Virus record (IMG/VR): IMGVR_UViG_3300029922_000001
Location: 186,001-250,000 of that record
DNA length: 64,000 bases
Strand: one strand, 5' to 3'
Below the pieces are notes generated by a model. The model saw only the letters and a program-made list of their open reading frames with translations. It was not told the DNA's origin and made no database searches. Positions 18,388 to 64,000 of this stretch are shown here, one piece after another (the first letter of the stretch is position 1; each line of letters starts with the position of its first letter). The position numbers and the translations under genes were made by a program.

Positions 18388-19060
18388 TGTGTAGTTCCTT
18401 GTACAATAAAATTAGTTCTGAAATAACTTTAATCCAACTATCTCTATTATAATTAGTTTTTGAGTGACATGAATAACACAAAGGTATAAGATTTTGTTCT
18501 GTGCAATTTTTTTTATTATAATCTATATGATGCACAGCTAATCTAACATTATTTTTATTGCATATTAAACATTTATTATCATATGTCTGTTTTATGTGAG
18601 TTTTTAATTTTTTTGTCCATTCTTTGGAATATGGTTCAAATGAAGTTCCTCCTTTCCAATTTGGATGATTTTCACCACTTAGTGAATTTTGACAAAGCAA
18701 TTCATATTGTTTACTTGTATATGCCCATTTACCCTTTTTAGATTCACTTAGATGTTTTTTAGTTTCATCAGAATGTTTTTTTGAGAAAAAATGATTTAAT
18801 TCACCAATTCTGGGGTTTTTAATTAAATAAGTTTTTAAACTCTCACTGATTTTTTGAGACACTTCAGGGCGACAGGATGGATTGTTTTCTCCGCTTACCT
18901 GTTTAGAACGTTTTTGACGTATTTCTTTTGCTCTTTGTTTCCCTATTCTTTCTTCCCATGTTATTTGAGATTGCCACTCTTTTTGACAATTTTTTGAACA
19001 AAATCTTTGTTTATTTTTTCTTTCAAATTCATTATTACATTTTTCACATATTAACATCAT
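18377..19060 (-). mobile_element. free-standing HNH homing endonuclease with NUMOD3-like DNA-binding repeats
   Basis: KKHSDETKKHLSESKKG, HPNWKGG, CLIC...VHHIDYNKKN...NLIPLCYSCH. Confidence 0.85.
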
Positions 19061-21756: not shown

Positions 21757-24700
21757 ATGGCGAACAATAAGGGCAAAAAAAACGTGGGCGAACAAAATAC
21801 TTTCAACGATGATAATGTACTAGTTGACGAATTAGTTAGTAGTAAACAGGTTGAAGTTGAAACAACTGAAGAACCAAACGTTCAAGCAGAATCGTTAGAT
21901 TTTACTATGCAGTCTGGTACTAGTGAAGGTACTGGTATTACATCTGATCCTACTACCAGTAATGGTGGTGTTATTTCTAAAGATATTGAAATAATTACTA
22001 GCTGGGTTAATGGTTCCTTTGGTTCTACTGCCGCTGCCTATAGCTCTCTTGATTTTAAAATATCTAGAACTACAGATACTGAGCCAGTAACGACAGGCGA
22101 AGTTAAGGTTTCTTTATTTAATCATGGTGAGTGGCCCTCCACTCGTACTTCGTGGACAAACAACCCTAACTTACCAGTTTTAGCAATTGGTGGTTCTTGG
22201 AATAATGCAAGTACTGGTGCTACATCCTTTACATTAAGCGCCCCAACAGTTGGTGGATCTTTTGTTTATGGTGGAGCTAGTGGAGCGGGTTCAACATGGA
22301 CTGGTATTGCACCTACAATTTATCTAAAGCCATTTGATGGCACTGTTGAAGCATCAAACTTTGTCGCAATTGCACAACCTGCTGGTGGCGCACCAAACTC
22401 AGGTAGTGCTGGTACCTTTAATGGTTTAGTTTTAACTAATAACACTACTGGATTTGCAATGTATGGTGGAACTTCAACTGAACTTGGTCATGGACAAACA
22501 GCCGCAAATCAAATAACATTTTATAGTGGAACTTCATTTGGTTCTGGTGGTTCAACAGGAAGTGTAATAACATTTAACAGCAATTTAACCATTGGTAGTG
22601 CTGGTGCCCTTACTCTTAACCCAGCTTCTGGTGGTTCAACTGTTACTGTACCTGCTACTGGAACCTTAATCACTTCTACCCCTGCTGGTCAGCAACTTAT
22701 TTCAGGTGCCGCATCTTCTGCTGGTTTAAGACTTCAACCAAGTGCCACAGGTACTCCAAATATTGCAGAATTTTATGGTGCTACAGCTACATTAGGTACT
22801 TTAACTGTTGTTGCTAATGGTGGCACTTCAACAAACGCAAACTCAGCATATATTAGTCAAAATGCTGTATTTTTTGGTGATGGATCTGGATTAGTTAACA
22901 TTGTACCTGCTGGATTTAATGGTATTTTACCAATGAATAAAGGTGGTACTGGAGCAAACCTTACTGGTAATGCTGGTGCTATCGTTTATACTAATGGTAC
23001 AACCACAATGGCGATTAACTCTCCTGCTGGTTCTGCTGGTATTCCTTTATTGTCAGGAACTTCTGGTACAGGAACACCAACGTTTACAGCATTAAGTTTG
23101 GCTGGTGGTTCTTCTGTTGTAACAGGTACATTACCAATTGGTAATGGTGGAACAGGTACAGCATCAGCACCAACTCAATACGGTGTAATTTATGCTACTA
23201 CAACTTCAGCATATGCATCTACTGCTGCTGGTACTACAACTACAGTATTAATTGGTAACGCTGCTGGTTCCCCAACTTTTGGAGCAGTTGTCTTAACTAC
23301 AATGGTTTCTGGTACTTTGCCTATTGCTAATGGTGGAACTAACTCTACTACTGCTGCTTCTGCTGGTGCGGTAATTTATTCTTCTGCTTCCGCATTCTTA
23401 CCTAATACCCCTGCTGGTTCTGCTGGTATTCCACTTGTATCAGGAACTTCTGGTACAGGCGCACCAACATTTTCAGCATTAAACTTAGCTGGTGGAACTT
23501 CTATAATTACTGGTACCTTACCAGTTGGTAATGGTGGAACAGGCGCTTCATCTTTCTCTTCCACTAACTCATTAATAGTTTCAGGTTCAACTTCTACTAA
23601 TCCGCTTACTACAGTTACTGGTGCGGCAGGATTGCTTTATGGAACCGCTGCCAATACAGCCCCAACATTTGTAACATCAGTTGGTACCGCTATGACATTC
23701 ACTGCTGGTATAACTTTGAATGGTGGAACCAATAGTGTAACCGTTACACCAATTAACTCTACAGATATTGTCAATAAAGCTTATGTTGATAATGTAGCAC
23801 AAGGTATTTCTGTTCGTGGATCAGTTAGAGCTTCATCTGTACCAACATTTGAATCATTAATTGGTGGTTTACTATTGGGTGGTGGTATTAGCAGTGCTTG
23901 GTATACCAACTCTACTATTACATGGAATAGTGTTACTTACACTGGATATATTACAACCACTGTTACAACTACTAATAATACACCAGGTACTTCAGCCGTT
24001 ACTTCTGGTGGTATCTATACAGGATTTGACTCACCTAGTGGAACTTCATCAGCATTGAACTTAGGTGATCGTGTCTTAATTAAAGATTTCTCCAACTCTG
24101 CTACATATAATGCAATTCCAGGTACATTGCGTTCTTCAGCTAATGGTATTTATGTTGTTGTAACCACTGGTGGTGGTGGACCTAATTATACTATCGCTTT
24201 TGCTCGTGCGTTAGATTGTACAACCGCCGCTCAGTTAAGTGAAGGTGTATTCACGTTTATAGACGAAGGAGCAACTGAAGCTGAAACTGGTTGGATTCAA
24301 GTTGATAATACTTCAGTTATTAATCCTGCGTCAGCCGCAGCAAGTGCCGCTGTAACACCACAGTTTACTCAATTTACTGGTGCTGCTGATGTTACTGTTG
24401 TTATGGGACTTCAAAAGAGTACCAATACTATAGGTGCTAATGTTAATATAACATCTGGATCAACAACATTTAGTTTAGGTGGTAATGCTGTTTCTCCGTT
24501 CTCTAATAACACTAATCCAACATTTACAGTAACTTCAGCATCTGCCGCAACACTCACATTAACACAGAATACATCAGGTTGGTCATTAGCAGCGGGTAGT
24601 ACAAACGTTAATACATTAACATTGAGTCAAGCTGGAACTGCAACCTATACAATTGCTGGTACTGGTGGAACGTTAACAATTTCCAACTCAGCTTCATTAA

Positions 24701-27241: not shown

Positions 27242-30200
27242 ATGGCTCAAGTCGATGTAATTATAACGCCACTGACTGGTAACATTGTCTTTTACGACAA
27301 TGACCTTGCTGCACAAAATAGTGTCCGTATTCAAGGAGAGTCACAAGGTGTTTTGTATTTTGCTGGTGACGGAGTTAATATTCCTAGTTCTGGCTTAACA
27401 GCCCCAACAGCAAGTACTAATCCTAATCAATCTGCATTGCCATATCCAGGTCAAGCCGCAAATGCATCAGCTAGTAATTCCTTGTTTGTTATATTAGACT
27501 CTATAACCGGTACTATTACACCAGGTTTATCTGGTTATGAAATGGGTTCCAGTACATTACCTTGGAGATATTGGGGTACAGCCGCAAACTTTAGTGGTGC
27601 AGTTACTTTAGCTGCAACATCTTCTTTATTTTTAGCTAATACTGGTGGTTCCAATGGCGCACCATTAACTTTTTCCGTATCTGCTTCAGCCCCAACCTCT
27701 TTATCTGCTGGTCAAATGTGGTGGGATGGAACTAATCTTAATTTTTATACCTCCACAACCAAGATTTTTGGTTGGGCTGATTTTTCCAATGTATCGGGGT
27801 TTTTAAGCGTATCACATGGTGGAACAGGGGTTGGAACATTTACCTCTAACGGAGTGTTATATGGTAATACTACTTCAGCCATTCAGGTTACGGCAGCATC
27901 TGGTGCTATAGGCGCTATTCTGCAAACAACCTCTTCAGGTGGTGTCCCATCTTTTGCCAATACTTTACCAGGAACATACACATTTTCTGGTTCGGGAACC
28001 GCATTAACAGTTACGAATAATGCATTAATTTCTGGTAACACTACATCACCAACTTATTATGGTTCCTCTTCTTCTGGTGGAACCCTAACGCTTAGTTCGA
28101 CTTCGAATGCGACCAAAGGTAAGATTTTAATTGGTTCCAATGCTGCTTTTGATGAAGTAAACACTAGGCTTGGTGTTGGTACACAGGGTCCAGTCCAAAG
28201 ACTAGATGTTGGCTATGGACATTTTCGATTTACAACACTTTCACACCCAAGCGCACCAACCGTAGCAACAGGCTCTGCTGGATCACTCACGGGAAATTAT
28301 TACTATTTCGTAACTTTTGTTACTACCCAAGGTGAAACAAATGCTGGCATAGTCTCATCTGTAGTTACTCCATCATCTCAACAAGTGAGTCTTACGGCAA
28401 TTCCAACAGACGCAACAGGCAATGCCACATCTCGAAATATTTATCGAACGACTACTGGCGGTGCTTCGGGTGGACCATTCTACTTACTAACGACCATAGG
28501 TGACAATACTACCACCTCCTATACAGATAATACGGTTGATGGATCACTAGGTACTATAAATTATTTCAGCAGAGAAAACACCACCGCTGGCTATTTTTAT
28601 GTAGGAACCCAATTTAGCGGATATTCAGGATTTTCAAATACTATATTTGGTCAATCTAACCAGAACATAAACAATATTTCTGGTACTTCAAATGTTGGTT
28701 TCGGACCCTTCACATATACCTCGCTCACCACAGGAACCAGAAATTCCGCTGTAGGATATAATGCACTCAACGCCCTAACAACAGGAAGTTACAATACTGG
28801 AGTAGGATGTTTCACTTTAGTTTCAGTTACAACAGGACAAAATAATGTCGGAATGGGACACAAGACACTTCAGGGTAGTATTGTTGGCAGCAATAATACT
28901 GCAATAGGAAGTAGCTGTTGTGACTATAACGTAAATGGATCAAGTATTGTAAGTATTGGATATAATTCATTAAACCAAAACTCTTTTTCAAGTAATATTA
29001 CAGCATTAGGTACTAGTACGGACTTTGTGTGTCCTGCCACGTTCACTGCTACAGCGACGAGTGGCGCTGGTTTGAATACTGGTGTGTATCAGTACATGGT
29101 CACATTTGTTGTCAACTCTAATGAAACCAATCCAAACTGTATAGTTAATGCCCCTGTCAGCGTTACAACAACGGGTTCAAACTCTCAGGTTTCAATAACA
29201 GGTATCCCAACTTATACTGGTCCGTATACTGCCACCCGAAAATTGTATCGAACAAAAGTAGGAGGATCATCAACATCTACTTTTTACTTGCTAACAACAA
29301 TAGGAGATAACATAACAACTTCTTACACAGATAGCACGGCTGATACTTCATTGGTAACGACATATAACCCAGTGAATAGTGGTATCTTAATAGGAGCGGG
29401 GGCGACTGGGCTTTACGCAAATCAGTTGGTAATTGGAAGCACAACATCCTCGGTTGCTGATGCTTATATAGGCAATGGAATCTATACATCTTCTCCCCAA
29501 AGTGTAACACTTCACGCAACGGGTGCCTCTGCATCGAACACGGCTGGAGCGAATTTCACTATCGCTCCAGGTCAAAGTACAGGAACTGCTGCTGGAGGAT
29601 TCTTCTCAGTTCAAACTGCTGCTGCTGGCTCAAGTGGCTCTACCTTTAATGCTTTAACTGAGCGATTCCGAATTGATTCAACAGGCTTAACGAGTGTTAA
29701 GGGTTCATTTAACGCTGGTTCTAGTGCCCAAATGACCATTGATACCTCTGGAAATATCGGAACTTCTGGTGGATATACTCAAACTGGAACAACAGCAAAT
29801 ACTTTTTCTGGTGCAACTACATTTTCAGCCGCAAGTACAGCTTTAACTGTCAATAATAATGCTACAATTAGTGGTTTATTAGGTGTTGGAGCCGCATCTT
29901 CCGCAGGTAACCAATTAAATGTAGTTACAACCGCTATTGGTAATGTTGGAATTTATGTTAATGCCATTACTGGTCAAACAGCTAATTTACAAAACTGGGC
30001 TGTTAATGGTACTCTAGTAGCTAATATTAATGCAAGTGGTAATTTTACTGCTACAACAACTATAACAATAAACAACATTGCTAGTGGTAATCCAATTTCC
30101 TTTACAGCCTCTGCGGGTGTAAGTGCTACTCAAGCTTATATTCTACCAACTAACGTTCCAAGTGGAACCGGTCAATTCTTAACATGTACATCAACAGCAC

Positions 30201-32464
30201 CATATCAATTTGCTTGGGCTGTACCTGCCGCAAGTGCTTCTAGCGTATCTATTGGTAGCACGGTTACTGGTGGTACAGATACTTACATGCTTTACATTAC
30301 CAATATAGGAACTCCAACCTTATCTCAAGATCCTGGTTTGACTTATAACTATGGAAACCAAGCGTTGCAATTGGCTGGTACAGTCTCAAATGCGGCTAAT
30401 TTGATAGTAACAAAAGCTGGAATTACCACAACATCAACAGCGGTTGCCCAAATTGTTAATAGCACTTTATCAACTGGTGGAAGTACTTTACAACAAAGTC
30501 CTGCTTTAGATTATATTGGTCACGCTTGGAATACAACCGCTACAGCGGCTGATAATTTTGTAAGAATGAGAAGTGAACTTCAAGTTACTTCTGCGGCTAC
30601 TCCTACTGGTACATTTATTTGGAAATCTTCAGTAGATACTGGAACTGCCTCATACACCAATAGAATGACCTTAACCACTGGTGGATTACTTACAGTTTCT
30701 AATGGTTTAACTATTACAGCAGGAACTTTCACTATTGGTAGTTTTACTTTTGCATTGAGTTCTAATTCAACTTTAAGCCTTAACAGTCAAACGTTGACCA
30801 TGAATACTACAATAGGTAATTTTACTATTGGTGCTGGCACCGGTACTTCTGCTACTCAGCATAATTTTGTTCAATCAGGCACTACTCAATATGTTCTAGA
30901 GTCAGCTACCGCCCCAACAGCGTTGGGTGACATGTATTATGGTAGTACTACTTCTTATGCTACTATGACTAAATTAAGTATAGGAGTTCGTGGTGCAACG
31001 TTAGTTGCATCAACATCAACCCCAACACCAACTTGGCTTGCACCATCCTCCACCGCTGGCGTAGCCATCATTTCTGGAGGTACTGGTGCTGATTTGGCTT
31101 ATGGTACAATTGTTGTAGCGGGCGGTGGAACAGGAAATAATACATTTGGCTCTACTAATTCATTATTAGTAACTGGTTCTAGCTCCACAGGAGCATTTGC
31201 CACTGTTACTGGTGCTAGTGGATTATTATATGGTACCGCTGCCAATACCGCTCCTACATTCACCACTTCTATTGGTGCTACTATTACATTCAGTAATGGT
31301 GCTACTATTTCAGGTGGAACCTTTACTTTGAACACATTAGAAAGTTGTACTTTAACTATTACAGGTACTGCTCCAAATGCTGGTAGATCCGATGTTGATA
31401 CATGGCAACCATCAGGTGCCCCAACAACTGATTATTATGCTTATTATCAACAGGTCAAATATGATTCTAACCAAGCGAATACTTTTGGAATTGCTGGTTT
31501 AAGATCCGATGCTATTACCACTGCTACAATGACAAGCTCTACATTGGCTCGCACTGATAGTATGCTTGCTTTTTATAGTCCAGGTCATGGTGGTACAGTA
31601 TCTCAGGCTACAGGTTTAAGAGTTACACAATTAGCTACTTGGTTAGGAACTACTACTAATTATATGGGTGTTCGTATTGAAAGTAACTATACTTCAGGAA
31701 CATTAACTAATGCTGCTGGTTTATATATAGATGTTATTGGTAGTAAGGGTTCTTCATCAGGTGCTTCAGTTTATTTGGTTTCTGATGGAACAGCTAAAAC
31801 TGGATTATCTTGGGGAACTAGCACTTCTGCATACACTGCTGATGTAGGTTTATTCCGTTCTGGTGCAGGCACTTTAACTATTACTGGCACGGCAACTGTA
31901 ACTAATGGTTTAACTATTAATAATGCAAAAACAACAGTTGCTGCCTCTACAACAGGTTATGCATCCTTAAATATTCCTGCTGGTACAGCCCCAACTTCAC
32001 CATCTAATGGTGATACCTATTATGATAGTAGCGGAATTCTTTGGTTCTATGATGGAACGACAGCTAAGAGAATTAATAAGCATCAAGCTTCAATTTGTAT
32101 GTGTGCTGGTTACACTCCAACAGGTACGGGCACTGGAGACGTTTGTGAATTCGTAGTGCCATATAAGGGTGATGGAACTACTCAAATAACTTATAATGTA
32201 AGAAGAATTGATTTTAGAGTTGGTACTGCTGGTACTGGTGGTAGTGTTACTGTTGAGGTTTACACCGGAACATCTGCATTTCCAGCATATGGTACAGCAA
32301 CTGTTATTGGAACAACAACACTTACAACGGGTACATATGAAAATTCCACAACTTCCTCCTTTACAACGTCCACAGTTCAAAGTGGTAATAAAGTTAGATT
32401 TACCCCTGTCACCATTGCGGGTACTGCAAACTGGACAGTTATGTTAGAGTTGGAGGAAGCATAA
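27242..32464 (+). CDS. giant tail fibre / adhesin-like protein (1740 aa)
   Basis: S/T/G-rich, NTAVGxxAL-type repeats, blocks shared with neighbouring fibre genes. Confidence 0.8.
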   Translation: MAQVDVIITPLTGNIVFYDNDLAAQNSVRIQGESQGVLYFAGDGVNIPSSGLTAPTASTNPNQSALPYPGQAANASASNSLFVILDSITGTITPGLSGYEMGSSTLPWRYWGTAANFSGAVTLAATSSLFLANTGGSNGAPLTFSVSASAPTSLSAGQMWWDGTNLNFYTSTTKIFGWADFSNVSGFLSVSHGGTGVGTFTSNGVLYGNTTSAIQVTAASGAIGAILQTTSSGGVPSFANTLPGTYTFSGSGTALTVTNNALISGNTTSPTYYGSSSSGGTLTLSSTSNATKGKILIGSNAAFDEVNTRLGVGTQGPVQRLDVGYGHFRFTTLSHPSAPTVATGSAGSLTGNYYYFVTFVTTQGETNAGIVSSVVTPSSQQVSLTAIPTDATGNATSRNIYRTTTGGASGGPFYLLTTIGDNTTTSYTDNTVDGSLGTINYFSRENTTAGYFYVGTQFSGYSGFSNTIFGQSNQNINNISGTSNVGFGPFTYTSLTTGTRNSAVGYNALNALTTGSYNTGVGCFTLVSVTTGQNNVGMGHKTLQGSIVGSNNTAIGSSCCDYNVNGSSIVSIGYNSLNQNSFSSNITALGTSTDFVCPATFTATATSGAGLNTGVYQYMVTFVVNSNETNPNCIVNAPVSVTTTGSNSQVSITGIPTYTGPYTATRKLYRTKVGGSSTSTFYLLTTIGDNITTSYTDSTADTSLVTTYNPVNSGILIGAGATGLYANQLVIGSTTSSVADAYIGNGIYTSSPQSVTLHATGASASNTAGANFTIAPGQSTGTAAGGFFSVQTAAAGSSGSTFNALTERFRIDSTGLTSVKGSFNAGSSAQMTIDTSGNIGTSGGYTQTGTTANTFSGATTFSAASTALTVNNNATISGLLGVGAASSAGNQLNVVTTAIGNVGIYVNAITGQTANLQNWAVNGTLVANINASGNFTATTTITINNIASGNPISFTASAGVSATQAYILPTNVPSGTGQFLTCTSTAPYQFAWAVPAASASSVSIGSTVTGGTDTYMLYITNIGTPTLSQDPGLTYNYGNQALQLAGTVSNAANLIVTKAGITTTSTAVAQIVNSTLSTGGSTLQQSPALDYIGHAWNTTATAADNFVRMRSELQVTSAATPTGTFIWKSSVDTGTASYTNRMTLTTGGLLTVSNGLTITAGTFTIGSFTFALSSNSTLSLNSQTLTMNTTIGNFTIGAGTGTSATQHNFVQSGTTQYVLESATAPTALGDMYYGSTTSYATMTKLSIGVRGATLVASTSTPTPTWLAPSSTAGVAIISGGTGADLAYGTIVVAGGGTGNNTFGSTNSLLVTGSSSTGAFATVTGASGLLYGTAANTAPTFTTSIGATITFSNGATISGGTFTLNTLESCTLTITGTAPNAGRSDVDTWQPSGAPTTDYYAYYQQVKYDSNQANTFGIAGLRSDAITTATMTSSTLARTDSMLAFYSPGHGGTVSQATGLRVTQLATWLGTTTNYMGVRIESNYTSGTLTNAAGLYIDVIGSKGSSSGASVYLVSDGTAKTGLSWGTSTSAYTADVGLFRSGAGTLTITGTATVTNGLTINNAKTTVAASTTGYASLNIPAGTAPTSPSNGDTYYDSSGILWFYDGTTAKRINKHQASICMCAGYTPTGTGTGDVCEFVVPYKGDGTTQITYNVRRIDFRVGTAGTGGSVTVEVYTGTSAFPAYGTATVIGTTTLTTGTYENSTTSSFTTSTVQSGNKVRFTPVTIAGTANWTVMLELEEA

Positions 32465-53270: not shown

Positions 53271-53344
53271 TGGTCCCTCTGCTGAGAATCGAACTCAGAC
53301 CGAACCGTTATAAGCGGTTCCGCTCTACCTTGAGCTACAAAGGG
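53271..53344 (-). tRNA. tRNA-Ile (anticodon UAU)
   Basis: CCCTTTG/CAGAGGG acceptor, GCTC/GAGC D-stem, AACCG-CTTATAA-CGGTT, CTGAG-TTCGATT-CTCAG, encoded CCA. Confidence 0.92.
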
Positions 53345-55643: not shown

Positions 55644-56003
55644 TTAGTCATTTATGTGTGCTAAACGACTTTTATAGATTAAAGTCGTTAATTCTTCATT
55701 GAGAAAAGATATAAATTTATCATAATTAACATCGGCATTTTGAATGGAATGATTTACCTCTGGATATTTACCTTTATTCGAATGCACAATAACTTTTAAG
55801 TCTTGTAACATAGCTCTTGTGGCTGGATTCCAAACATGTCCCCATCTACGATGTTCAAAACTTTTAAATATATCCAGTAATTCCTGAATGTTATATTTGA
55901 CTCCCTTAACCACAATGAAATAATGATGAACCCAAACTTGCTCAGACTCATATTTAACAGTATCAATGCCTAAATCATTCATAATATCAGAAGTATACCT
56001 CAA
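55644..56003 (-). CDS. hypothetical protein (paralogue of the previous gene)
   Basis: YFIVVKGVKYNIQELLDIF. Confidence 0.7.
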   Translation of the reverse strand: MRYTSDIMNDLGIDTVKYESEQVWVHHYFIVVKGVKYNIQELLDIFKSFEHRRWGHVWNPATRAMLQDLKVIVHSNKGKYPEVNHSIQNADVNYDKFISFLNEELTTLIYKSRLAHIND

Positions 56004-56647
56004 ATCGTATATGATTTGAGGTTATAAAAATACGCCCTTGTTAATCTTTTGACCGTAGAGCTAGGTCCAATCCAAGACATGACGTGCCAACCACTAACAC
56101 CCATTGACGAGCCTGTAACAGCCATTTGGAGCCTAATGGATATGTTCTTGACTTTCATGCCCAACTCTACACATAATGCTTTAATTGTGGTTTGAACCCA
56201 CTCTAAGGAAATGTCATTCTCACCTTCAAGAAGAGGTATATAATGATCTAAAAACAATCTAAAATCATCATCAAAAAGAGTTGGATTCTCAAAGGGAATT
56301 TCATAGTCAGAAATGGCAATACAACTCAAATGTTTAGCAAAATCAGATAGAATAAATGCTTTATCCTTAATATGCACAAGCATTTCATCAATGCGAGGAT
56401 GATTCAAAGTGTCTTTGAAATGATGTAGTTGCGCTCCCATCAATCGTTTATTGAAATCCTTAATTTGCTTATTGTAGTCAACCTCATTGTCCTCATTGAC
56501 TTCTATGGGGTTGTTTTTAATGATCGTATCTAAGATCATGAGATTTGGTAACTTTGAGTTATCAATATCGAACAAATTTGGTTTGTATAGAAAATCGCGC
56601 ATAATGCGTTTATTATACTTTATATTAACCCCTTTCAGCTTCTTCAA
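56000..56647 (-). CDS. stand-alone class I aaRS (GluRS-type) anticodon-binding domain protein
   Basis: IKALCVELGMKVKNISIRLQMAVTGSSMGVSGWHVMSWIGPSSTVKRL resembles the GluRS C-terminal helical domain; no HIGH/KMSKS; true start may be ATG 56602. Confidence 0.6.
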   Translation of the reverse strand: MKKLKGVNIKYNKRIMRDFLYKPNLFDIDNSKLPNLMILDTIIKNNPIEVNEDNEVDYNKQIKDFNKRLMGAQLHHFKDTLNHPRIDEMLVHIKDKAFILSDFAKHLSCIAISDYEIPFENPTLFDDDFRLFLDHYIPLLEGENDISLEWVQTTIKALCVELGMKVKNISIRLQMAVTGSSMGVSGWHVMSWIGPSSTVKRLTRAYFYNLKSYTI

Positions 56648-57044: not shown

Positions 57045-57328
57045 TATAATGGTATTATACCTTTTTTGCCGTATGTCTTGTTAGGTAATGGTTTTGTCCA
57101 TGAAATCAAATCATCGCCAGCTTTTTGCAGTTCTTTTCTAGTTGGTGTTCCATGAAGCATATACATTCCTATTGCTTTAACATCTTTTGATACATCTTCC
57201 AGTACATAATCTAATCCAGTGTAATCATGTAATTTCAACTGTGCGGCATTAGATTGTGCAATTACAGTTAAAATTGAAGCTTCTTCTGCGGGAACATTAA
57301 TCATATTATTCCTCAATATAGAAGTCAC
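57044..57328 (-). CDS. hypothetical protein
   Basis: 94-aa ORF. Confidence 0.6.
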   Translation of the reverse strand: MTSILRNNMINVPAEEASILTVIAQSNAAQLKLHDYTGLDYVLEDVSKDVKAIGMYMLHGTPTRKELQKAGDDLISWTKPLPNKTYGKKGIIPL

Positions 57329-57692
57329 TTAATTTGCCAAGGAAAAAATCGTGAATTATTTCAGTGTCACTTTCTGCGTCTTCGTCAGTTGTTTTAGTGT
57401 CACCCTCTTCATCTTCGTCACCTACTTCAATTGTTGCAACTATAACATTATTACTATCACTAACTATTGCAACCAAACCGTTAATTAAACCTAGTGCTGA
57501 AATGTAAAACTTGTCATCAATACAAGTAAGACCACAAGTTAAACCATCTAATTTTTCTACTGTTTCGGTATCTATTGGATGTTTAGTTAACAAAACCTTT
57601 GATACTATTTCTGGGGCAACTTCAACATATTTATTTAATAATGAAATGATAGATTCTAAATTGTCACTTCCAAGTCCACTGTACATACTCAT
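57306..57692 (-). CDS. hypothetical protein
   Basis: 128 aa; ATG 5 nt after TACAAT. Confidence 0.7.
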   Translation of the reverse strand: MSMYSGLGSDNLESIISLLNKYVEVAPEIVSKVLLTKHPIDTETVEKLDGLTCGLTCIDDKFYISALGLINGLVAIVSDSNNVIVATIEVGDEDEEGDTKTTDEDAESDTEIIHDFFLGKLSDFYIEE

Positions 57693-57708
57693 GCTTTATT
57701 GTAAAGCA

Positions 57709-58053
57709 TTAAAATGTGTCATGTGGTTCTTGACCAATAGCTTGTTTTAAATCTGTGTGAAATTGGGCAACAGGATTTGGTTGTTGTTGCAATAATGGTT
57801 GTTGAGTAGCGTCAGGCTTATAAATTAAATGCCACAACCCTTCAATGGTCTTTAAGATTTGTGGTAGTTTAGAATCGGTATCATCAACTTCATGTTCTAT
57901 AACAGAAGCAAGATCACGTAACTCTCCAGCGGCATGAGTACAAGTACTTGCAGTTGTTAATCTAATAGCAACTCTAGTAACAGAGTCCGCTTTTTTAAAT
58001 TCACCCTTTTTGTCATATGCCGTTGCGTATTCAATAAGTTTATCTGCGTTCAT
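57709..58053 (-). CDS. hypothetical protein with recurrent motif
   Basis: KLIEYATAYDKKGEFKKADSV. Confidence 0.7.
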   Translation of the reverse strand: MNADKLIEYATAYDKKGEFKKADSVTRVAIRLTTASTCTHAAGELRDLASVIEHEVDDTDSKLPQILKTIEGLWHLIYKPDATQQPLLQQQPNPVAQFHTDLKQAIGQEPHDTF

Positions 58054-58089
58054 GATTACCAAATTCTACAAACCTGGTAATCATTCCTT

Positions 58090-58446
58090 TTAATCAGTAT
58101 TAACTTTTAGAATTAATCTTGTTAAATCTGCGGTGTCTGCTTTAATGCCATAAAATTCTTGTAAGTCTAATGCCCTATTCCATGCGGAATTGTATGGATT
58201 TTCAGGTTTACTAACTTCAAATTCCTTTTGAATTGCCACAATTTCTTCATCTAGTCTAAATTGTGCGTTAGTTAAATATTTATAAATCCACTTTACCGTT
58301 CCATATTCTTTTTGACGTTCAACATGCACTGTTGCGTGTGCTAAAATAGCATCAGTAAAATTGTGATTTTTTCTAACAACGATCACTGGATTGAAAGCAA
58401 AAGCTTGACATGCTCCAGGTAGCCAAGACACACGGATAATTTTCAT
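58090..58446 (-). CDS. zincin-like small protein with degenerate HExxH
   Basis: AILAHATVHVERQKEYG..WIYKYL. Confidence 0.5.
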   Translation of the reverse strand: MKIIRVSWLPGACQAFAFNPVIVVRKNHNFTDAILAHATVHVERQKEYGTVKWIYKYLTNAQFRLDEEIVAIQKEFEVSKPENPYNSAWNRALDLQEFYGIKADTADLTRLILKVNTD

Positions 58447-58655
58447 ATGATTATTATAGCTTGTTTTGTTGAGCTAAATCAAGTAGTATTTTTTGACGTT
58501 CTAATGGTGCAGAGACATAATCTGTTTTGATTAATTTACTGGTTTGCGTACTAGATAGACGATCTAATATACCAATCATGCTATTTAATAATATAATTTT
58601 TCTATTTTTTCTTTATCGCAATTTACAATAATTTTATCCAGTCTATCCAATCTAT

Positions 58656-58982
58656 TCATTTTATTCGCTCCATTAATATTTTGCTTCTTTTAGATGGTGA
58701 TTTGGTTAGGAAGCCACAACCTTTAGCTTTATTGTAATCTAAATCAAAATCAAATTGATCTTTAGTGATATCAACTATGTCTTGTGTTTGTGGATTTTTT
58801 AAAAACCAATGAGTAATACCATCGACATTTAAAATGAATGGTTTGAAACCCAATTCTTTATATTTAAGATGATAAGCTACCTCGGAAGCCACATAACAAT
58901 GACCCCAATAAGGATTAGAATGACCCCTGAATTGGGGTTTTAATAAATCTTGTGTTAAATGGCTTTGGATTTGTGTAATCAT
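58656..58982 (-). CDS. hypothetical phage protein
   Basis: WGHCYVASE, THWFL, VDITKDQF (possible Cys-His-Asp triad). Confidence 0.7.
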   Translation of the reverse strand: MITQIQSHLTQDLLKPQFRGHSNPYWGHCYVASEVAYHLKYKELGFKPFILNVDGITHWFLKNPQTQDIVDITKDQFDFDLDYNKAKGCGFLTKSPSKRSKILMERIK

Positions 58983-59527
58983 TTCTTGACGATTCTTTTC
59001 CTGATATCAGCTTCAATTAAGGCATAGTCAGCACGTACTCTATCTGTGACTTGATAACCATCCTCAACATCAATACCAAAACGTTTTCGTGCATTGACGG
59101 TATCAGCATCTGGACCTGTCATGGGTAGATATTTAAGACTACCATTAACTTTAACCATTTCTCTATCGTTATTGCCGTAAGCACATTTAGCTACTGAATT
59201 GTAAGGATTACCATCTTCTGGAATATAACCACGCAGTTTACTTCCGTCCCAATAAATAATAAAGAACACCGGATATTCCCAGTCTCCACCAGCACTAACT
59301 CCTAAAAAGGTTAAACCATTATCAAGGGTGTGAATACCCGTTAATGGTGTGAATTTATCTTCAGCATCTTCTACGTTCTCACAATCAAAGCTAACTTTTG
59401 CTAAATCCTTTGTGATAGTTGTGGTAAGTGTTGGGTATTGATAATAACCGAATTCATCAGAATCTCTAGCTTTTTGAAGTTTAATTCTAAAATCTTTTTC
59501 AGGTATTTCCACAAAGAATCTACTCAT
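58979..59527 (-). CDS. hypothetical protein
   Basis: 182 aa; AGGDWEYPVFFIIYWDG. Confidence 0.7.
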   Translation of the reverse strand: MSRFFVEIPEKDFRIKLQKARDSDEFGYYQYPTLTTTITKDLAKVSFDCENVEDAEDKFTPLTGIHTLDNGLTFLGVSAGGDWEYPVFFIIYWDGSKLRGYIPEDGNPYNSVAKCAYGNNDREMVKVNGSLKYLPMTGPDADTVNARKRFGIDVEDGYQVTDRVRADYALIEADIRKRIVKK

Positions 59528-59720
59528 TGTCTAGATCCACTACTTTAGTTAAATTAGGTAATAACTCTACTAGCTTACGATAAGCTTTAGTGTTAATATG
59601 AAATTTTTCAGTATCTGTGTATATTCTAAACTGACTATCATTGAACGAAGTTACAATACCTACAATTTTATCTGTATTAACATGGTAAATATATGGTCCA
59701 TTTTTATATGTGATATACAT
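59520..59720 (-). CDS. hypothetical protein
   Basis: 66 aa; ATG 6 nt after TATAAT. Confidence 0.65.
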   Translation of the reverse strand: MYITYKNGPYIYHVNTDKIVGIVTSFNDSQFRIYTDTEKFHINTKAYRKLVELLPNLTKVVDLDNE

Positions 59721-59887
59721 GCTTACATTATAACACTATTTGACTATAAAATACAACACTTTAGGTGGATTACGGTAATATTTAGCTAAAGTTGCTTGAC
59801 CCTCCAGTGTTGCTAATGCACGATCAATAATAGCTTCTCTATCTTTCATATCTTGAATAATTGCATTAATATTTTTCGTGTTACTCG

Positions 59888-59993
59888 TGGAGCGGGTAGC
59901 GGAATTCGAATCCGCATTTTAGCGTTCCTCTAAGTAAATATTTTAATATTTCTCACAGGCAACGCCATGTTCTAACCATTGAACTATATCCGC
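59888..59993 (-). tRNA. tRNA-Gly (GCC) with a 31-nt insert/intron (59927-59957) between positions 36 and 37
   Basis: GCGGATA acceptor, GTTC/GAAC D-stem, TGGCG-TTGCC|insert|AA-CGCTA, GCGGA-TTCGAAT-TCCGC, CCA; removing the insert gives a canonical 75-nt tRNA. Confidence 0.88.
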
Positions 59994-60014
59994 GTGAATA
60001 TATTATACCACTTA

Positions 60015-60281
60015 TTAAGACGCTTTGACCTTTTTGTGAGTGTATTGTTCGGCGTTAATTAATTGTGAAATATTAGGATCTGAGCTAAATTCAATATCAT
60101 TCTTAATGATATTGAGGACTTCTTCACCATTTGGCATAGAAATTAATTTCTCTATTAAAGAAAATAATTTTCTATTTTGTTCCATTTGTGCGTCAAGTAC
60201 ATCTTTATTAACCATAATTTTGGGTGTAAAATTTGGTATATATTTATAACTGCATGGCATTCTTTCTGATCGTATTGGCAT
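60015..60281 (-). CDS. hypothetical protein
   Basis: 88-aa ORF. Confidence 0.55.
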   Translation of the reverse strand: MPIRSERMPCSYKYIPNFTPKIMVNKDVLDAQMEQNRKLFSLIEKLISMPNGEEVLNIIKNDIEFSSDPNISQLINAEQYTHKKVKAS

Positions 60282-60287
60282 AGATTA

Positions 60288-60656
60288 TTATAGTCTAATT
60301 CTAAAAGAAACTGATGGATCAACAATAATTACAGGTTCTGGATCATAATAACCAACAATAGGACCGTTTTCATAATAAGCTACCCCACCACCTTCATACC
60401 AAAACATGGTGACATCACCAATAACGTAGGTTGTAACCCAATGGCATCTAGGTCTTTCACCAATGCGCCAAACACGAGTAGGAGTGAATCTATAATGTTC
60501 AAATCTACGAATTCTAGAGTGTTCTGGTCTGCGATTTTGTTCTTGTCTAATTGCGGGTCTGCGTGATTCTTGATGACCACCACGACGCTGAGCTAAACCA
60601 CTAACAGAAAGAGCTAGAATAGAGCAAAGAGCAATAAGTTTTAGATTTTGTTTCAT
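60288..60656 (-). CDS. putative secreted protein
   Basis: N-terminal signal peptide (LIALCSILALSVSGLA), Arg-rich segment. Confidence 0.65.
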   Translation of the reverse strand: MKQNLKLIALCSILALSVSGLAQRRGGHQESRRPAIRQEQNRRPEHSRIRRFEHYRFTPTRVWRIGERPRCHWVTTYVIGDVTMFWYEGGGVAYYENGPIVGYYDPEPVIIVDPSVSFRIRL

Positions 60657-60686
60657 ACCTTATTATTATCCCTTTGCACTTTAAAT

Positions 60687-61037
60687 TTACTGAGAATTAT
60701 TTAAGATATCACTTCTTAAATGATCATATTTGCTTCGTTCATCTGCATACAAAGTGATAAGGGATTGTAGTCTTTCATCAGTAATGTCAGTAAGAATTTC
60801 CATTTCTGGAATTTCACCCCATACGTTGTATATCTTATGTTTAATACAAAACTGCGTATGTCTTCGTTTACAATAAGGCTGGAAAATTAGCACATAAAAC
60901 ATAAATATTGTGAAAATACAGCCCATTACAAGTACCCAATGGAAAATAGCACTTGCAATTAAAAGAAAGTATCCACCAAAAACAATCCACATTGGCAGAA
61001 CACGAGTGGTGAAATGTGTGTTATAAAAATTACTCAT
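60687..61037 (-). CDS. putative membrane protein
   Basis: two N-terminal hydrophobic helices. Confidence 0.65.
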   Translation of the reverse strand: MSNFYNTHFTTRVLPMWIVFGGYFLLIASAIFHWVLVMGCIFTIFMFYVLIFQPYCKRRHTQFCIKHKIYNVWGEIPEMEILTDITDERLQSLITLYADERSKYDHLRSDILNNSQ

Positions 61038-61264
61038 GATGAAAGTGTACCTTATTTCTTGATATGTTTATGGGTGTACTCATGAAATTCGGCAAGATGA
61101 AGATGCGGATGGGCGTTATTTTGAGCCATTTGCTGTATTGATTTCTTTGCCTTTAAGCATTTAGTATGGAAATATCCTTCCGGGGGGTTGACACAAGCTT
61201 AAAACATTTTAAATGCCAATTCCAGTGTTTGTTACAAAACTTACAAGTTTTCATATATAACTCG

Positions 61265-61292
61265 TGGAGCGAATAGCGGGATTCGAACCCGC
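61265..61292 (-). pseudogene. orphan tRNA 3' half (T-arm, acceptor 3' strand, CCA), Gly-like
   Basis: GCGGG-TTCGAAT-CCCGC-TATTCGC-T-CCA with no matching 5' half upstream. Confidence 0.75.
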
Positions 61293-61521
61293 CGATTTAT
61301 AATTTAATGTGGTTTACCATATTGATCGCCAAAATATATCAAAGCAATTAATTCTAGAAAAACAGAACTAAAATGATGAAATTCCAATGAACCTAATAAG
61401 GCTATGAAGAAAAATATCATGGAAACTTACACTTTTACATTTTGGACAATGTAGTTTTTCTGTAGCTTTCAAGTCTTTGAAATTGACAATAAATTGTCTT
61501 GTTGCTATCATAGTTTTACTC

Positions 61522-61620
61522 GGAGCGGGTGTGGGTAGTCGAAACCCAATCTACTACTTCCTTTAGGTATATTCCTATCCCAAAGGAAGGAAGTTATAAT
61601 AGCCGTTATAAGACACCCGC
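61522..61620 (-). tRNA. tRNA-Gly (UCC) with a 25-nt insert/intron (61560-61584) between positions 36 and 37
   Basis: GCGGGTG/CACCCGC acceptor, glyT-like D-arm, ACTTC-CTTCC|insert|AA-GTAGT (one T-T mismatch), TGGGT-TTCGACT-ACCCA; ends TCC without the final A. Confidence 0.82.
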
Positions 61621-61647
61621 TTACACATATATTATGCCCAATAATGA

Positions 61648-61869
61648 TTAGGTTTTTAGTGCAAATTCCTCATTTGTAGATACTAATTTTCTGATATATT
61701 CGGAAAGAACGTCTTCTACACCATTTGAACCATAGTCGGCAGTAAAAGCATAATCACCACCATCAATTCCTGAATTTTCGTATTTAACCAGTAGGCGCTT
61801 ATGTGGTCTTTCATAAATACCAACAGCACGTCCACATACCATAGTTACATATAATCTTTGATTTTCCAT
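61648..61869 (-). CDS. hypothetical protein
   Basis: ATG 61869 lies 6 nt after TATAAT. Confidence 0.65.
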   Translation of the reverse strand: MENQRLYVTMVCGRAVGIYERPHKRLLVKYENSGIDGGDYAFTADYGSNGVEDVLSEYIRKLVSTNEEFALKT

Positions 61870-61876
61870 GTGATTA

Positions 61877-62224
61877 TTATAGCACAAAATCCGCCGCAAC
61901 TTCTATGTGTTTTACAGTACTCACCTCACTTGCTTCTTTATTGTATTGATCAATTTTATTAGCCATACCAACAAGGCATTCTGCTATTTCTCTTAAATCT
62001 TCTGTTTCTATAAACGGCATATGTATTTCTGATCTACAATCCCCTTCTTCGCCACAAAACACAAACGTCGTGAATAAATTAGGACCTCCTGGGAATTGAC
62101 GATTTGGATTGATATCTATTGTGTCAATATAAAAACATTGTTTAGCGCCTTCTCTATCCGTATTTTCCGCACCAACTACTCTATATGTTTTTGTTTTAAC
62201 TTCACGATCAATCATTTTATTCAT
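61877..62224 (-). CDS. hypothetical protein
   Basis: 115-aa ORF. Confidence 0.65.
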   Translation of the reverse strand: MNKMIDREVKTKTYRVVGAENTDREGAKQCFYIDTIDINPNRQFPGGPNLFTTFVFCGEEGDCRSEIHMPFIETEDLREIAECLVGMANKIDQYNKEASEVSTVKHIEVAADFVL

Positions 62225-62496
62225 CCTTCAACCTCAATAACTTTATTATATTGAATTTGTTCAGATAGCGTGTACTCTACAATTTCTACGGAATTTAAAT
62301 ATTCTTTATTAGAAACATTTCTTTGAGGATCATAATAAGAAATGTTTCTAAACTGAGTTAAATGCGCTTTAATATGATTTAACTGTTTCCATATTTTACC
62401 TTTTTTGTTAAATAACGGATCTAATCCACCTGTAGAAAATAATCCAGTTTCTTTATTTCTTAATTTATATACTTTCATTGTAAAACTCGAATACAT
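62221..62496 (-). CDS. hypothetical phage protein
   Basis: VYKLRNKETGLFSTGG..P.F.KKGKIW. Confidence 0.7.
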   Translation of the reverse strand: MYSSFTMKVYKLRNKETGLFSTGGLDPLFNKKGKIWKQLNHIKAHLTQFRNISYYDPQRNVSNKEYLNSVEIVEYTLSEQIQYNKVIEVEG

Positions 62497-62513
62497 TATT
62501 AGTATATAATGTA

Positions 62514-62801
62514 TTATTTAATTAATGATTTAGCAGAAACTTCAACTAATTCCACTAAAGATTTTTCACTCAAATATCCACTATTAAATAATTTAACAGA
62601 TTGAGCAAGAAATTCAGATTCTTCCAATACCATTTTTTCTGTTAATGGCACAGAATTTCGTAATTTTTCAGCAAGTAAAATTATGGTTTTTCGCAATTCT
62701 ACATCTAAATGTTTTCCGTTTTCTAATTTAAATTTAAGTAAATTTAAAGTTTCATTCAATTCGTAATTAATTTCTTCTAGGGTTTCAACAGTGTGTTTCA
62801 T
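62514..62801 (-). CDS. hypothetical protein
   Basis: 95-aa helical ORF. Confidence 0.65.
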   Translation of the reverse strand: MKHTVETLEEINYELNETLNLLKFKLENGKHLDVELRKTIILLAEKLRNSVPLTEKMVLEESEFLAQSVKLFNSGYLSEKSLVELVEVSAKSLIK

Positions 62802-62940
62802 ATCAAATAATAATTTAATAATTTATATATTCTATACCTTCGGTTTGTTAATGAGTTTTGTCTGCAAATCATATTATATTTAAAATACTAGTAATTTTAC
62901 TTGTTTATGGTATATAAATAAAATTATTCTTATCACAATC

Positions 62941-63429
62941 CTAAGTACTATCTTTAGTTGGATTAACACTAAATAATTCTTTTCTTATTTCCATCCACAA
63001 TTTTCCTAATTGATTTTGTCCATCTTTATTAGGTCCCCATCCCCAAAAATTATCACGCCAACTACACTCTACGATTGCATTATCACCACTAGCTTTAAGT
63101 TTTTTCATAACATACGGATGTTGATTTGCTTTTTCTTTTAAAATTTCTTTCATAATATCAAGTTTAACTTCATCCCAATCAACACGTCTTATATTTTTAT
63201 TTTCCTCAGCCCATTTGAAACAAGCATGTGCTGAAGGCATTTTTCTAATCATATTTTTGATTTTTGGATCGTCAAATTTCTCAGAATGATAAGCGTGTTC
63301 TGATGTTGGATAAATCTTACCCTTCCAATATAGTTGAAATGCAGAAAAATTAGAGAAAATATAATAATCACGTTCATAACAATCAAGGATTGGTAAGTCG
63401 TAATTCGCTAAATCGTGATATTCAATCAT
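62941..63429 (-). CDS. NADAR (YbiA/DUF1768) family hydrolase
   Basis: FSNF, YPTSEHAYHSEKF, DNFWGWG, GQNQLGKLWMEIR; start at ATG 63429. Confidence 0.9.
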   Translation of the reverse strand: MIEYHDLANYDLPILDCYERDYYIFSNFSAFQLYWKGKIYPTSEHAYHSEKFDDPKIKNMIRKMPSAHACFKWAEENKNIRRVDWDEVKLDIMKEILKEKANQHPYVMKKLKASGDNAIVECSWRDNFWGWGPNKDGQNQLGKLWMEIRKELFSVNPTKDST

Positions 63430-63436
63430 GCTATTA

Positions 63437-63697
63437 TTATAAGTAATCTTCATGATATTCTACTACTGGAGTGTTTGATTTAGCTTTAGACTCTTCTTCA
63501 GCTAACATGCCCTTTTGATAAGCCTCATTAAGCAATCTTAAATGTCTAGCTTCATGATCAGTAATCTCTCCATCCATTTGTGAAATTGAATTTATATCTT
63601 GTTCAACATACATCATCTTAGGAGATTCGTTAACGTCCTGAAATAATTTAAGATCGTGTGTTTTGGTTGTATTTTCGTTTATGATATTTGGTTTCAT
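63437..63697 (-). CDS. hypothetical protein
   Basis: 86 aa; ATG 5 nt after CATAAT. Confidence 0.6.
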   Translation of the reverse strand: MKPNIINENTTKTHDLKLFQDVNESPKMMYVEQDINSISQMDGEITDHEARHLRLLNEAYQKGMLAEEESKAKSNTPVVEYHEDYL

Positions 63698-63753
63698 GCT
63701 TTATTATGAGCAATAATCACGTAAGAATACCTGTTTTTGGGACTTTTAGAAAT

Positions 63754-64000
63754 TTAATGATGTAAATAAATAATCCTGATAATGCCAAAAACAGCAAAAG
63801 TAGCGACAATTATATTGATGATTGCAGATTGATAAATTTTCTTATGATAAGTTAGAATGAATGCGCCAGTAGCACCCATTAAAACAATAATGTAATAAAT
63901 TACTTGATTGGAATTAATGACATTAAAACTAGATAATGCATAAGAAAGTATTACAAAAAATACACCTATCCAACCAATAAATTCAATGATTTTGTTTTTC
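63754..64000 (-). CDS. small membrane protein (5' truncated by window edge)
   Basis: KNKIIEFIGWIGVFFVILSYAL...YQSAIINIIVATFAVFGII, three hydrophobic helices; not in the supplied ORF track. Confidence 0.65.
   Translation of the reverse strand, partial: KNKIIEFIGWIGVFFVILSYALSSFNVINSNQVIYYIIVLMGATGAFILTYHKKIYQSAIINIIVATFAVFGIIRIIYLHH

Follow-up and report, generated by a model that had tools for sequence, protein, structure and literature searches.

How does a huge phage come to carry a glycine tRNA gene that is interrupted immediately after its anticodon, and can such a gene give rise to a working tRNA? We examined this question in a 64,000-nt stretch (positions 186,001 to 250,000, hereafter the window) of IMGVR_UViG_3300029922_000001, a 441,498-bp contig from a peat metagenome. 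The same phage is also present on a 521,591-bp ENA contig, and its genome (Ga0311363_10000008; ERZ27248709 k141_1408874) is given here as 441–521 kb. The window encodes proteins that fit a huge phage of a bacterium (DnaJ, DnaK, a PIN domain plus PhoH, gyrase B and A, RNase HII, ThyX, a sigma factor, IMPDH, and two proteins of about 1,730 amino acids), and GenBank phages hold nothing closely related. The original prediction, made from sequence alone, was that the locus at 61522-61620 is a second tRNA-Gly(UCC) gene with a 25-nt insert at the 36/37 site, and this observation is correct in every detail. Its interpretation, a splice-site rule specific to Gly anticodons, is only partly supported.

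The minus strand of the locus reads as a glyT-type tRNA-Gly(UCC) gene. The acceptor stem is GCGGGUG/CACCCGC and is followed by the discriminator U73 and CC-G in place of CCA, the T arm is UGGGU-UUCGACU-ACCCA, and the anticodon stem is ACUUC/GUAGU with a U30·U40 mismatch. Between the strands of this stem lies CU-UCC-[25 nt]-AA. The bacterial Gly identity set comprises G1-C72, C2-G71, G3-C70, U73, C35 and C36, and all of these are present. The insert UUUGGGAUAGGAAUAUACCUAAAGG forms a hairpin in which CUUCCUUUGGG pairs with CCUAAAGGAAG (11 bp, one G·U) and an A is bulged on the 3′ side. The precursor folds far better than its shuffled versions (z = −5.0, 0 of 200 shuffles as stable), none of 1000 shuffled inserts gives as stable an anticodon arm, and the three pairs that span the junctions arise in about 3% of shuffled inserts.

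Coordinates of the interrupted tRNA-Gly(UCC) gene, its sister gene and associated features in the window.
Position	Strand	Feature	Basis
61585..61620	−	tRNA-Gly(UCC) 5′ exon, positions 1-36: acceptor, glyT-type D arm, anticodon stem 5′ strand, C32 U33 and anticodon UCC	86% identical over 1-36 to annotated tRNA-Gly of phage G and Boevelstad; alignments with intact genes
61560..61584	−	25-nt intervening sequence between C36 and A37; hairpin with a GGAA loop and a bulged A at 61568; last two bases (GG) pair with C35 and C36	Single gap block against intact homologues; MFE structure and shuffle test; unique within 72 kb
61522..61559	−	tRNA-Gly(UCC) 3′ exon: A37 A38, stem GUAGU, variable AGAU, T arm, acceptor CACCCGC, U73 (61524), then CC (61522-61523)	Sequence and alignment; ARAGORN (lowered threshold) calls tRNA-Gly(tcc) after removal of the insert
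61518..61523	−	3′ trailer CCGAGU, a member of the motif (N73)CC[A]CGAG(A/U) that follows nearly every tRNA of this phage	Motif scan and sequences
61631..61636	−	CATAAT, −10-like hexamer 10 nt upstream of the tRNA 5′ end, within GGGCATAATATAT; resembles TGGTATAATATAT upstream of the sister gene	Read from the sequence; not flagged by a two-hexamer promoter scan; promoter function inferred
59888..59993	−	Sister gene tRNA-Gly(GCC) with encoded CCA and a 31-nt insert at 59927-59957, also between C36 and A37	Rfam tRNA 52.8 bits with a 35-nt skipped block; spliced form called Gly(gcc) at the ARAGORN default threshold; alignment with intact genes
59893..60036	−	Stretch covered by the one metatranscriptome contig (158 nt, depth 3.8): sister tRNA with its insert retained plus a 43-nt 5′ leader	0 mismatches and 0 gaps; the only piece of the 5.9 kb compared that the RNA run covers
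60002..60010	−	TGgTATAAT, extended −10-like element 8 nt upstream of the sister tRNA	Read from the sequence; inferred only
62941..63453	−	NADAR-domain protein, part of the NAD/ADP-ribose gene set around the tRNA genes; Tpt1/KptA, DUF4326 and PARP lie just beyond the window end	Pfam PF08719, 4.2e-27

To fix the boundaries of the insert, we compared the gene with intact tRNA-Gly genes of other phages. The similarity of its 5′ exon to the annotated tRNA-Gly(UCC) genes of Bacillus phage G and Pseudomonas phages stops exactly at C36. The 17-nt anticodon arm as it would read after removal of the insert, ACTTCCTTCCAAGTAGT, occurs verbatim in two intact tRNA-Gly(UCC) genes from IMG/VR (loci L154 and L158), both of which ARAGORN calls at its default threshold. 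The same search for the sister gene (TGGCGTTGCCAACGCTA) found seven intact tRNA-Gly(GCC) genes. In the alignment of our gene with L154, L158, phage G and Pseudomonas phage Boevelstad, the insert is a single 25-column gap block between C36 and A37, and the sister gene displays a 31-nt block at the same site against six intact tRNA-Gly(GCC) genes. These comparisons settle the site and the Gly identity, and they rule out the readings Pro(agg) and Pro(ggg) that ARAGORN assigned to the two Gly genes.

The original prediction had conceded that it would fail if the mismatch in the anticodon stem and the missing terminal A reflected decay in all relatives. They are not decay. The U30·U40 mismatch belongs to a working type of phage tRNA-Gly(UCC), about half of the tRNAs of this phage end in N73-CCG, and the unusual D arm UAUAACGGCUAUUAU is the ordinary glyT type, apart from U10. 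By software measures the gene is nevertheless a marginal tRNA. ARAGORN without introns and the Rfam tRNA model (RF00005), even at E<=10, report nothing at this locus, and ARAGORN with introns finds it only at a lowered threshold and misreads it as Pro(ggg). The spliced form is likewise called only at a lowered threshold (-ps80), its MFE fold is not a cloverleaf, and it carries a U10·U25 mismatch that its relatives lack. The sister gene reaches both the Rfam gathering score and the ARAGORN default threshold and is much the stronger candidate for function.

To establish whether the two Gly genes stand alone, we ran ARAGORN with introns on contig positions 186001-281395, which extend beyond the window end. 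In these 95 kb we count 19 tRNA genes (17 ARAGORN calls plus two atypical paralogues), five of which carry anticodon-loop inserts: Gly(GCC) with 31 nt, Gly(UCC) with 25 nt, Cys(GCA) with 17 nt, and two genes, called Val(aac) and Arg(tct) by ARAGORN, with 18 nt each. We rejected the Arg reading because the gene has a long variable arm, A73 and a Leu-like D arm, shares its anticodon stem with the neighboring Leu(AAG) gene and sits in a Leu cluster. With the insert at 36/37, it reads CU-UAG-AA, that is tRNA-Leu(UAG). The gene called Val(aac), at 10195-10293 of locus L001 (a piece of the same contig that is 100% identical to window 57102-64000), is ambiguous between Thr(UGU), Val(UAC) and Val(AAC), and we do not count it as support.

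In the MFE fold of each of the five precursor arms, the last exon base pairs with insert base n−1, the exon base before it pairs with insert base n, and the first insert base pairs with insert base n−2. Both junctions therefore lie in one continuous helix, offset by 2 bp, and the excised hairpin would carry a 2-nt 3′ overhang. Shuffled inserts give these three pairs in 1.5–3% of trials each, and 0–4 of 1000 shuffles reach the observed stability. The proposed Gly-specific rule CC|U...AGG|AA is a special case of this geometry, as the Leu gene obeys it with different bases (AG|C...GCU|AA) and the Cys gene is compatible with GC|U...AGC|AAA. The pairing bases follow the anticodon (CC/GG in Gly, AG/CU in Leu, GC/GC in Cys), whereas the letters CC/AGG are not conserved. 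For the Leu gene, the geometry picks anticodon UAG, which fits its long variable arm, its A73, its Leu-like D arm and its place in a Leu cluster. The independence of these cases is limited. The two Gly inserts share the ends UKUGRG...ACYUARAGG and a bulged A at −9, and only 19 of 5000 shuffles align as well, so they are probably homologous and are not two independent witnesses. The Cys site is ambiguous among three registers that all give the same product. The firm independent cases are thus Gly and Leu, with Cys compatible.

We looked for relatives of this architecture in several sequence collections. Exact and degenerate DNA patterns returned only the source contig from IMG/VR, and one rule-based hit (L007) is a malformed tRNA-like sequence without this architecture. 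The rule-based pattern matched at least 120 loci in JGI metagenomes, and none of these 120 passed a T-stem plus acceptor filter that did recover both window genes as a control; one of them (L016) looked tRNA-like, but ARAGORN found nothing there. BLAST of the Leu gene and of the fifth interrupted gene against GenBank phages gave only chance AT-rich hits, a match in Lak-B1 (L151) is not a tRNA, and an ARAGORN "intron" in locus L163 does not share the architecture. The flanking proteins (a 122-aa ORF, a 226-aa ORF and Tpt1) have no relatives in IMG/VR or in a set of 5.8 billion proteins. All other contigs that carry them are 100% identical, leaving no population variation, and no related phage was found on which evolutionary conservation or covariation could be judged. 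The sequence is identical in JGI, ENA and Logan assemblies of several samples and is thus not an assembly artefact, DNA runs show no insert-less allele, and each insert is unique within 72 kb.

Evidence for expression is confined to the sister gene. A single contig from one peat metatranscriptome run contains the sister tRNA with its insert and ends within 2 nt of the tRNA 3′ end, and nothing covers the tRNA-Gly(UCC) gene. This is consistent with a discrete unspliced precursor but says nothing about a spliced form, since contigs drop rare variants and ordinary libraries capture mature tRNAs poorly. No spliced RNA was seen. After splicing, the exons would meet as ...ACUUCCUUCC|AAGUAGUAG... in the tRNA-Gly(UCC) gene, with the junction word ACUUCCUUCC|AAGUAGUAGAU, and as UGGCGUUGCC|AACGCUAAAAU in the sister gene.

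Directly upstream of the main tRNA array, on the same strand, lies an operon that ends in IF3, Tpt1/KptA (PF01885, 1.6e-44, full length) and DUF4326, with NADAR and a WGR-PARP protein close by. About 38 kb further on there is a T4-type polynucleotide kinase-phosphatase, Pnkp (phrog_505, 2.5e-75), and, separately, a kinase-only paralogue. Tpt1 removes the 2′-phosphate left at the junction in fungal and plant tRNA splicing, and in jumbo phages it has been read as part of tRNA repair (PMC7824862, PMC9503650). The Tpt1 neighborhoods of phage G and phiCD211 show no link to tRNA genes, and KptA in other phages is not linked to interrupted tRNAs, so its presence and position here are suggestive only. 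No RNA ligase, RNase III, EndA or 2H enzyme was found in contig 186–300 kb, the 114 kb read, which excludes the remaining roughly 330 kb and the host. Neither the 351-aa ORF heading the Tpt1 operon nor a 235-aa ORF next to a kinase has a PDB match, and the 351-aa ORF, the only one compared with the Atlas, gave no informative hit.

Combining these findings, we propose that the locus is a phage tRNA-Gly(UCC) gene interrupted by a protein-dependent intervening sequence, one of at least five such inserts of 17–31 nt in the tRNA genes of this phage. We give this reading a probability of about 0.5, with splicing plausible but unproven. What the analysis establishes is the position of the junctions, the helix that spans them and extends the anticodon stem, the pairing of bases 33–38 (the anticodon included) in the precursor, the co-variation of the junction pairs with the anticodon, and the presence of end-healing enzymes. 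Excision and everything downstream of it are inferred: an endonuclease that reads the helix would cut both strands 2 bp apart, releasing a hairpin with RNase III- or Mini-III-like geometry, and an RNA-repair-type ligation would rejoin the halves into a normal 7-nt loop, CUUCCAA, with Pnkp and Tpt1/KptA as candidates to take part. If the cut leaves 5′-P/3′-OH ends, an Rnl-type ligase could seal them directly, and if it leaves a cyclic phosphate, Pnkp or a 2H enzyme plus Tpt1 would be needed; the present evidence does not allow a choice between these routes. The Leu and Cys sites lack the CC^U sequence, and the 17–18-nt inserts leave only 3–6 bp beyond the cut, which is short for classical RNase III, and both points count against this nuclease family.

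In this view, the unprocessed RNA would be inert for decoding and charging, as the GlyRS determinants C35 and C36 are buried, single-strand-specific anticodon nucleases could not reach it, and use of these tRNAs would depend on a processing activity. The suggestion that the insert hides the anticodon from host anticodon nucleases thus remains a possibility only. The two interrupted Gly tRNAs read the dominant Gly codons of the phage (GGU at 52 and GGA at 26 per thousand), and three large proteins contain 12–14% Gly, but a timing switch dedicated to Gly-rich fibre proteins, the other proposed role, is unlikely as the sole role because Leu, Cys and one more tRNA are also interrupted. Of the original interpretation, the boundaries, the Gly(UCC) identity, the architecture shared with the first interrupted tRNA-Gly and the argument that structure rather than random insertion is being kept are supported, whereas the restriction to Gly anticodons is not. 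A more far-reaching reading, which we consider tentative and rather unlikely, is that these hairpins at 36/37 (35/36 in Cys), with 3′ ends tailored to the anticodon, are a new class of tRNA intron in bacterial viruses. They would be cut out by an RNase III-family or other helix-reading nuclease and the exons resealed by the phage's own tRNA-repair enzymes, so that the tRNAs would be masked from host anticodon nucleases and usable only once the phage's processing enzymes are made.

Alternatively, the insert may never be removed, and the gene may yield a stable tRNA-shaped RNA with a long closed anticodon arm that is either a dead tRNA or serves another purpose, such as a decoy for tRNA-binding defence proteins or modification enzymes. 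The detection of only the unspliced form of the sister RNA, the failure of Rfam to recognize the locus, the poor score of the spliced product, the lack of processing enzymes in the region read and the presence of tRNA-like remnants at 61267-61329 and just past the window end, which show that decay does occur in this genome, all speak for this reading. We nevertheless consider it unlikely, because five inserts in different tRNAs keep pairing tailored to their own anticodons, the exons stay identical to working arms of other phages, both readers of the main Gly codons would be lost, and terminal loops of 3–4 nt cannot decode. A related and still less likely possibility is that RNase III cuts out the hairpin but the halves are not rejoined, as with the intervening sequences of bacterial 23S rRNA. 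The 2-nt 3′ overhang, which RNase III and Mini-III also leave (PMC4357697), and the absence of a ligase from the region read fit this, but a tRNA nicked between 36 and 37 should not decode, and the end-healing enzymes of the phage imply a sealing step.

It is also doubtful that the inserts are neutral hairpins that arose from a small palindromic mobile element or a template-switch mutation and happened to land in anticodon loops, their structure being a by-product of their origin. All are hairpins, the two Gly inserts look as if one had been copied from the other gene, and homing endonuclease and TnpB genes lie near the tRNA clusters. However, no other copy of any insert occurs in 72 kb, placement is confined to 35/36-36/37 wherever it can be determined, the junction pairs involve exon bases and differ by anticodon, and the insert sequences cannot be derived from flanking exon sequence alone. 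A self-splicing intron is effectively refuted by size. Although group I introns interrupt bacterial and phage tRNA anticodon loops and the Gly inserts end in G, 17–31 nt leave no room for a catalytic core, no Rfam intron or ribozyme matched, and the 5′ exon ends in C rather than U.

Interrupted tRNA genes in huge phages have been reported once, in Lak phages, with no mechanism proposed. The present phage offers a much simpler case, in which the inserts are tiny, their boundaries can be fixed to the base by comparison with intact homologues, and together they define a structural rule that predicts where the cuts fall and what ends they leave. If the inserts are spliced, bacteria-infecting viruses would have a protein-dependent tRNA splicing system, Tpt1/KptA and Pnkp in phages would have a substrate beyond damage repair, and a virus would have a way to keep its tRNAs hidden or switched off until its own enzymes appear. 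If they are not spliced, the case shows that a phage can lose both of its main glycine tRNAs to hairpin insertions while keeping the exons intact, an outcome that would need its own explanation.

Among known systems, the introns of Lak megaphages (Devoto et al. 2019, PMC6784885), which their authors call "enigmatic", also interrupt tRNA genes of a huge phage, a tRNA-Gly(UCC) included, in the anticodon loop just after the anticodon. They are, however, 79–114 nt long, carry an internal tRNA-like T arm (Table S6), are placed at 37/38, give or take one, and show no pairing of their last two bases with C35/C36. The inserts described here, which are plain hairpins, are best regarded as a very small, helix-embedded and previously undescribed form of such introns, although their removal is inferred. 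The protein-spliced bulge-helix-bulge introns of archaea and eukaryotes (EndA/Sen) are likewise short and not self-splicing, the 3′ part of the intron pairs with the anticodon region, the 5′ cut is distal and the 3′ cut proximal to the tRNA body, and the exons require a ligase, with Tpt1 as the last enzyme of the fungal and plant pathway. In our phage there are no 3-nt bulges, the cuts would be 2 bp apart rather than separated by a 4-bp helix between two bulges, the site is 36/37 instead of 37/38, the tRNA features are bacterial (U73), and no EndA was seen among Pfam hits in contig 186–300 kb. Group I introns share the location in the anticodon loop of a bacterial-type tRNA gene but are ten times longer and have a catalytic core (P3–P9) of about 200 nt or more.

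RNase III and Mini-III processing sites, including those of rRNA intervening sequences, resemble the present arrangement in that a hairpin is grafted onto a loop and the predicted scissile bonds face each other across a helix with a 2-nt 3′ stagger, a similarity of position only. B. subtilis Mini-III prefers ACC^U and leaves 2-nt 3′ overhangs (PMC4357697), which is close to (G/U)CC^U opposite AGG^A in the Gly genes. The helices are 12–20 bp including the anticodon stem, the short ones being below the usual RNase III size, and rRNA intervening sequences are not religated, whereas a tRNA would have to be. Finally, although phage tRNA repair by T4 Pnkp and Rnl1, and by KptA in jumbo phages (PMC7824862, PMC9503650), is described as a response to host anticodon nucleases and not as a maturation step for a phage's own interrupted genes, the present phage encodes both Pnkp and KptA, and joining two tRNA halves broken in the anticodon loop is exactly what this machinery does.

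Nearly every tRNA gene of this phage is followed by the sequence (N73)CC[A]CGAGA, which often continues as UAAUAUG and runs straight into the next tRNA. This element is a conserved spacer and probably a processing signal, and about half of the genes encode CCG instead of CCA. A 63-nt tRNA-like remnant lies inside the window, which has a perfect T arm (GCGGGUUCGAAUCCCGC), a partial acceptor and the same UCCACGAG trailer as the sister tRNA-Gly(GCC), but no proper anticodon arm, and is seen only as sub-threshold Rfam hits. A second remnant with the same trailer lies just past the window end.

Coordinates of additional features in the window, on the same contig beyond it, and on other contigs (L numbers denote retrieved sequence loci; L001 and L149 belong to the phage contig)
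Location	Strand	Position on the contig	Feature
window 61267-61329	-		tRNA-like remnant
L001 near 6937			second remnant
window 53271-53344, 59888, 61522; L001 8332-10485; L149 4600-5300			tRNA genes with the trailer motif
L001 10802-11362 and neighbors	-	about 253.9-254.5 kb, just beyond the window end	IF3 - Tpt1/KptA - DUF4326 operon
window 62941-63453			NADAR
L149 17548-18396	+	about 287.9-288.8 kb	polynucleotide kinase-phosphatase
L136 19107-19628			kinase-only paralogue
L149 5016-5119	-	275381-275484	tRNA-Leu(UAG)
downstream of the Leu cluster	-	about 274.8-275.1 kb	two atypical tRNA-like genes
L153 1343-1540	+		split tRNA-Gly(UCC), Patescibacteria MAG JBBTRL010000003.1
window 1539-2060 and 2097-3935	+		PIN_4 nuclease gene and PhoH ATPase gene
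window 56000-56647	-		215-aa anticodon-binding-domain protein
		about 264.8-266.3 kb	class II Asp/Asn/Lys-type synthetase
window 19150-21618, 21757-26955, 27242-32464	+		three large glycine-rich proteins
L163 4198-4314	-		class-II-like tRNA, IMGVR_UViG_3300033141_004242
window 14300-14396	+		tRNA-Asn call, inside ORF 14174-15208
L149 5564-6910 and 12831-13940; window 18377-19060			TnpB, GIY-YIG and HNH genes

The operon encoding IF3, the Tpt1/KptA RNA 2′-phosphotransferase and DUF4326 runs straight into the tRNA array. A WGR-PARP protein and an Rv2179c-like exoribonuclease lie nearby, whereas the NADAR gene is located inside the window. Further along the contig, the phage carries a T4-type polynucleotide kinase-phosphatase (AAA_33 + HAD_PNKP; phrog_505, 2.5e-75), and a kinase-only paralogue of this enzyme was also identified. 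No partner RNA ligase was found nearby. The run of small ORFs beside the tRNA genes includes a stand-alone protein that matches only the anticodon-binding domain of Glu/Gln-tRNA synthetases (PF19269, 4.6e-14).

ARAGORN assigns one of the interrupted genes to Arg(tct) with an 18-nt intron. Its long variable arm, A73, D arm and neighbors, however, identify it as tRNA-Leu(UAG) interrupted at 36/37. Downstream of this Leu cluster are two paralogous, atypical tRNA-like genes of 82-84 nt that start with GCUAGGGUGGAUAA and whose loops read UU-UAG-AA and UU-AAG-AA. ARAGORN calls them Lys(ttt) and Ser(act), which looks wrong. These genes are followed by an HNH endonuclease ORF and, more generally, two TnpB (OrfB_IS605/Cas12f-like) genes, a GIY-YIG endonuclease and HNH endonucleases are scattered around the tRNA clusters. 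At a lowered threshold, ARAGORN also calls a tRNA-Asn with a 9-nt intron within an ORF of the window, which is probably a false positive.

Elsewhere in the window, a PIN_4 nuclease gene lies directly before a PhoH ATPase gene, forming a split PhoH2-like pair. The PhoH ORF contains a LAGLIDADG domain, which suggests an intein or similar insertion. The three large proteins have a glycine content of 12-14%, with glycine encoded almost entirely by GGU and GGA. None of them has a Pfam match, and the 822-aa one matches two PHROGs of unknown function.

Anticodon-region insertions were also encountered in two other genomes. In another phage contig (L163), a class-II-like tRNA carries about 29 extra bases in the anticodon region and is called Gln(ctg) with an intron by ARAGORN. 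Its fold is different, comprising two hairpins, and one register would give the anticodon UCA. In a Patescibacteria MAG (L153), a complete tRNA-Gly(UCC) with CCA is split at the same place as the phage gene (after CUUCC) by a 119-nt insert, which has a 7-bp terminal stem and contains a second, complete tRNA-Gly(UCC). The stagger of this insert is opposite to the one seen in the phage described here, and its organization recalls the tRNA-in-intron of Lak phages.
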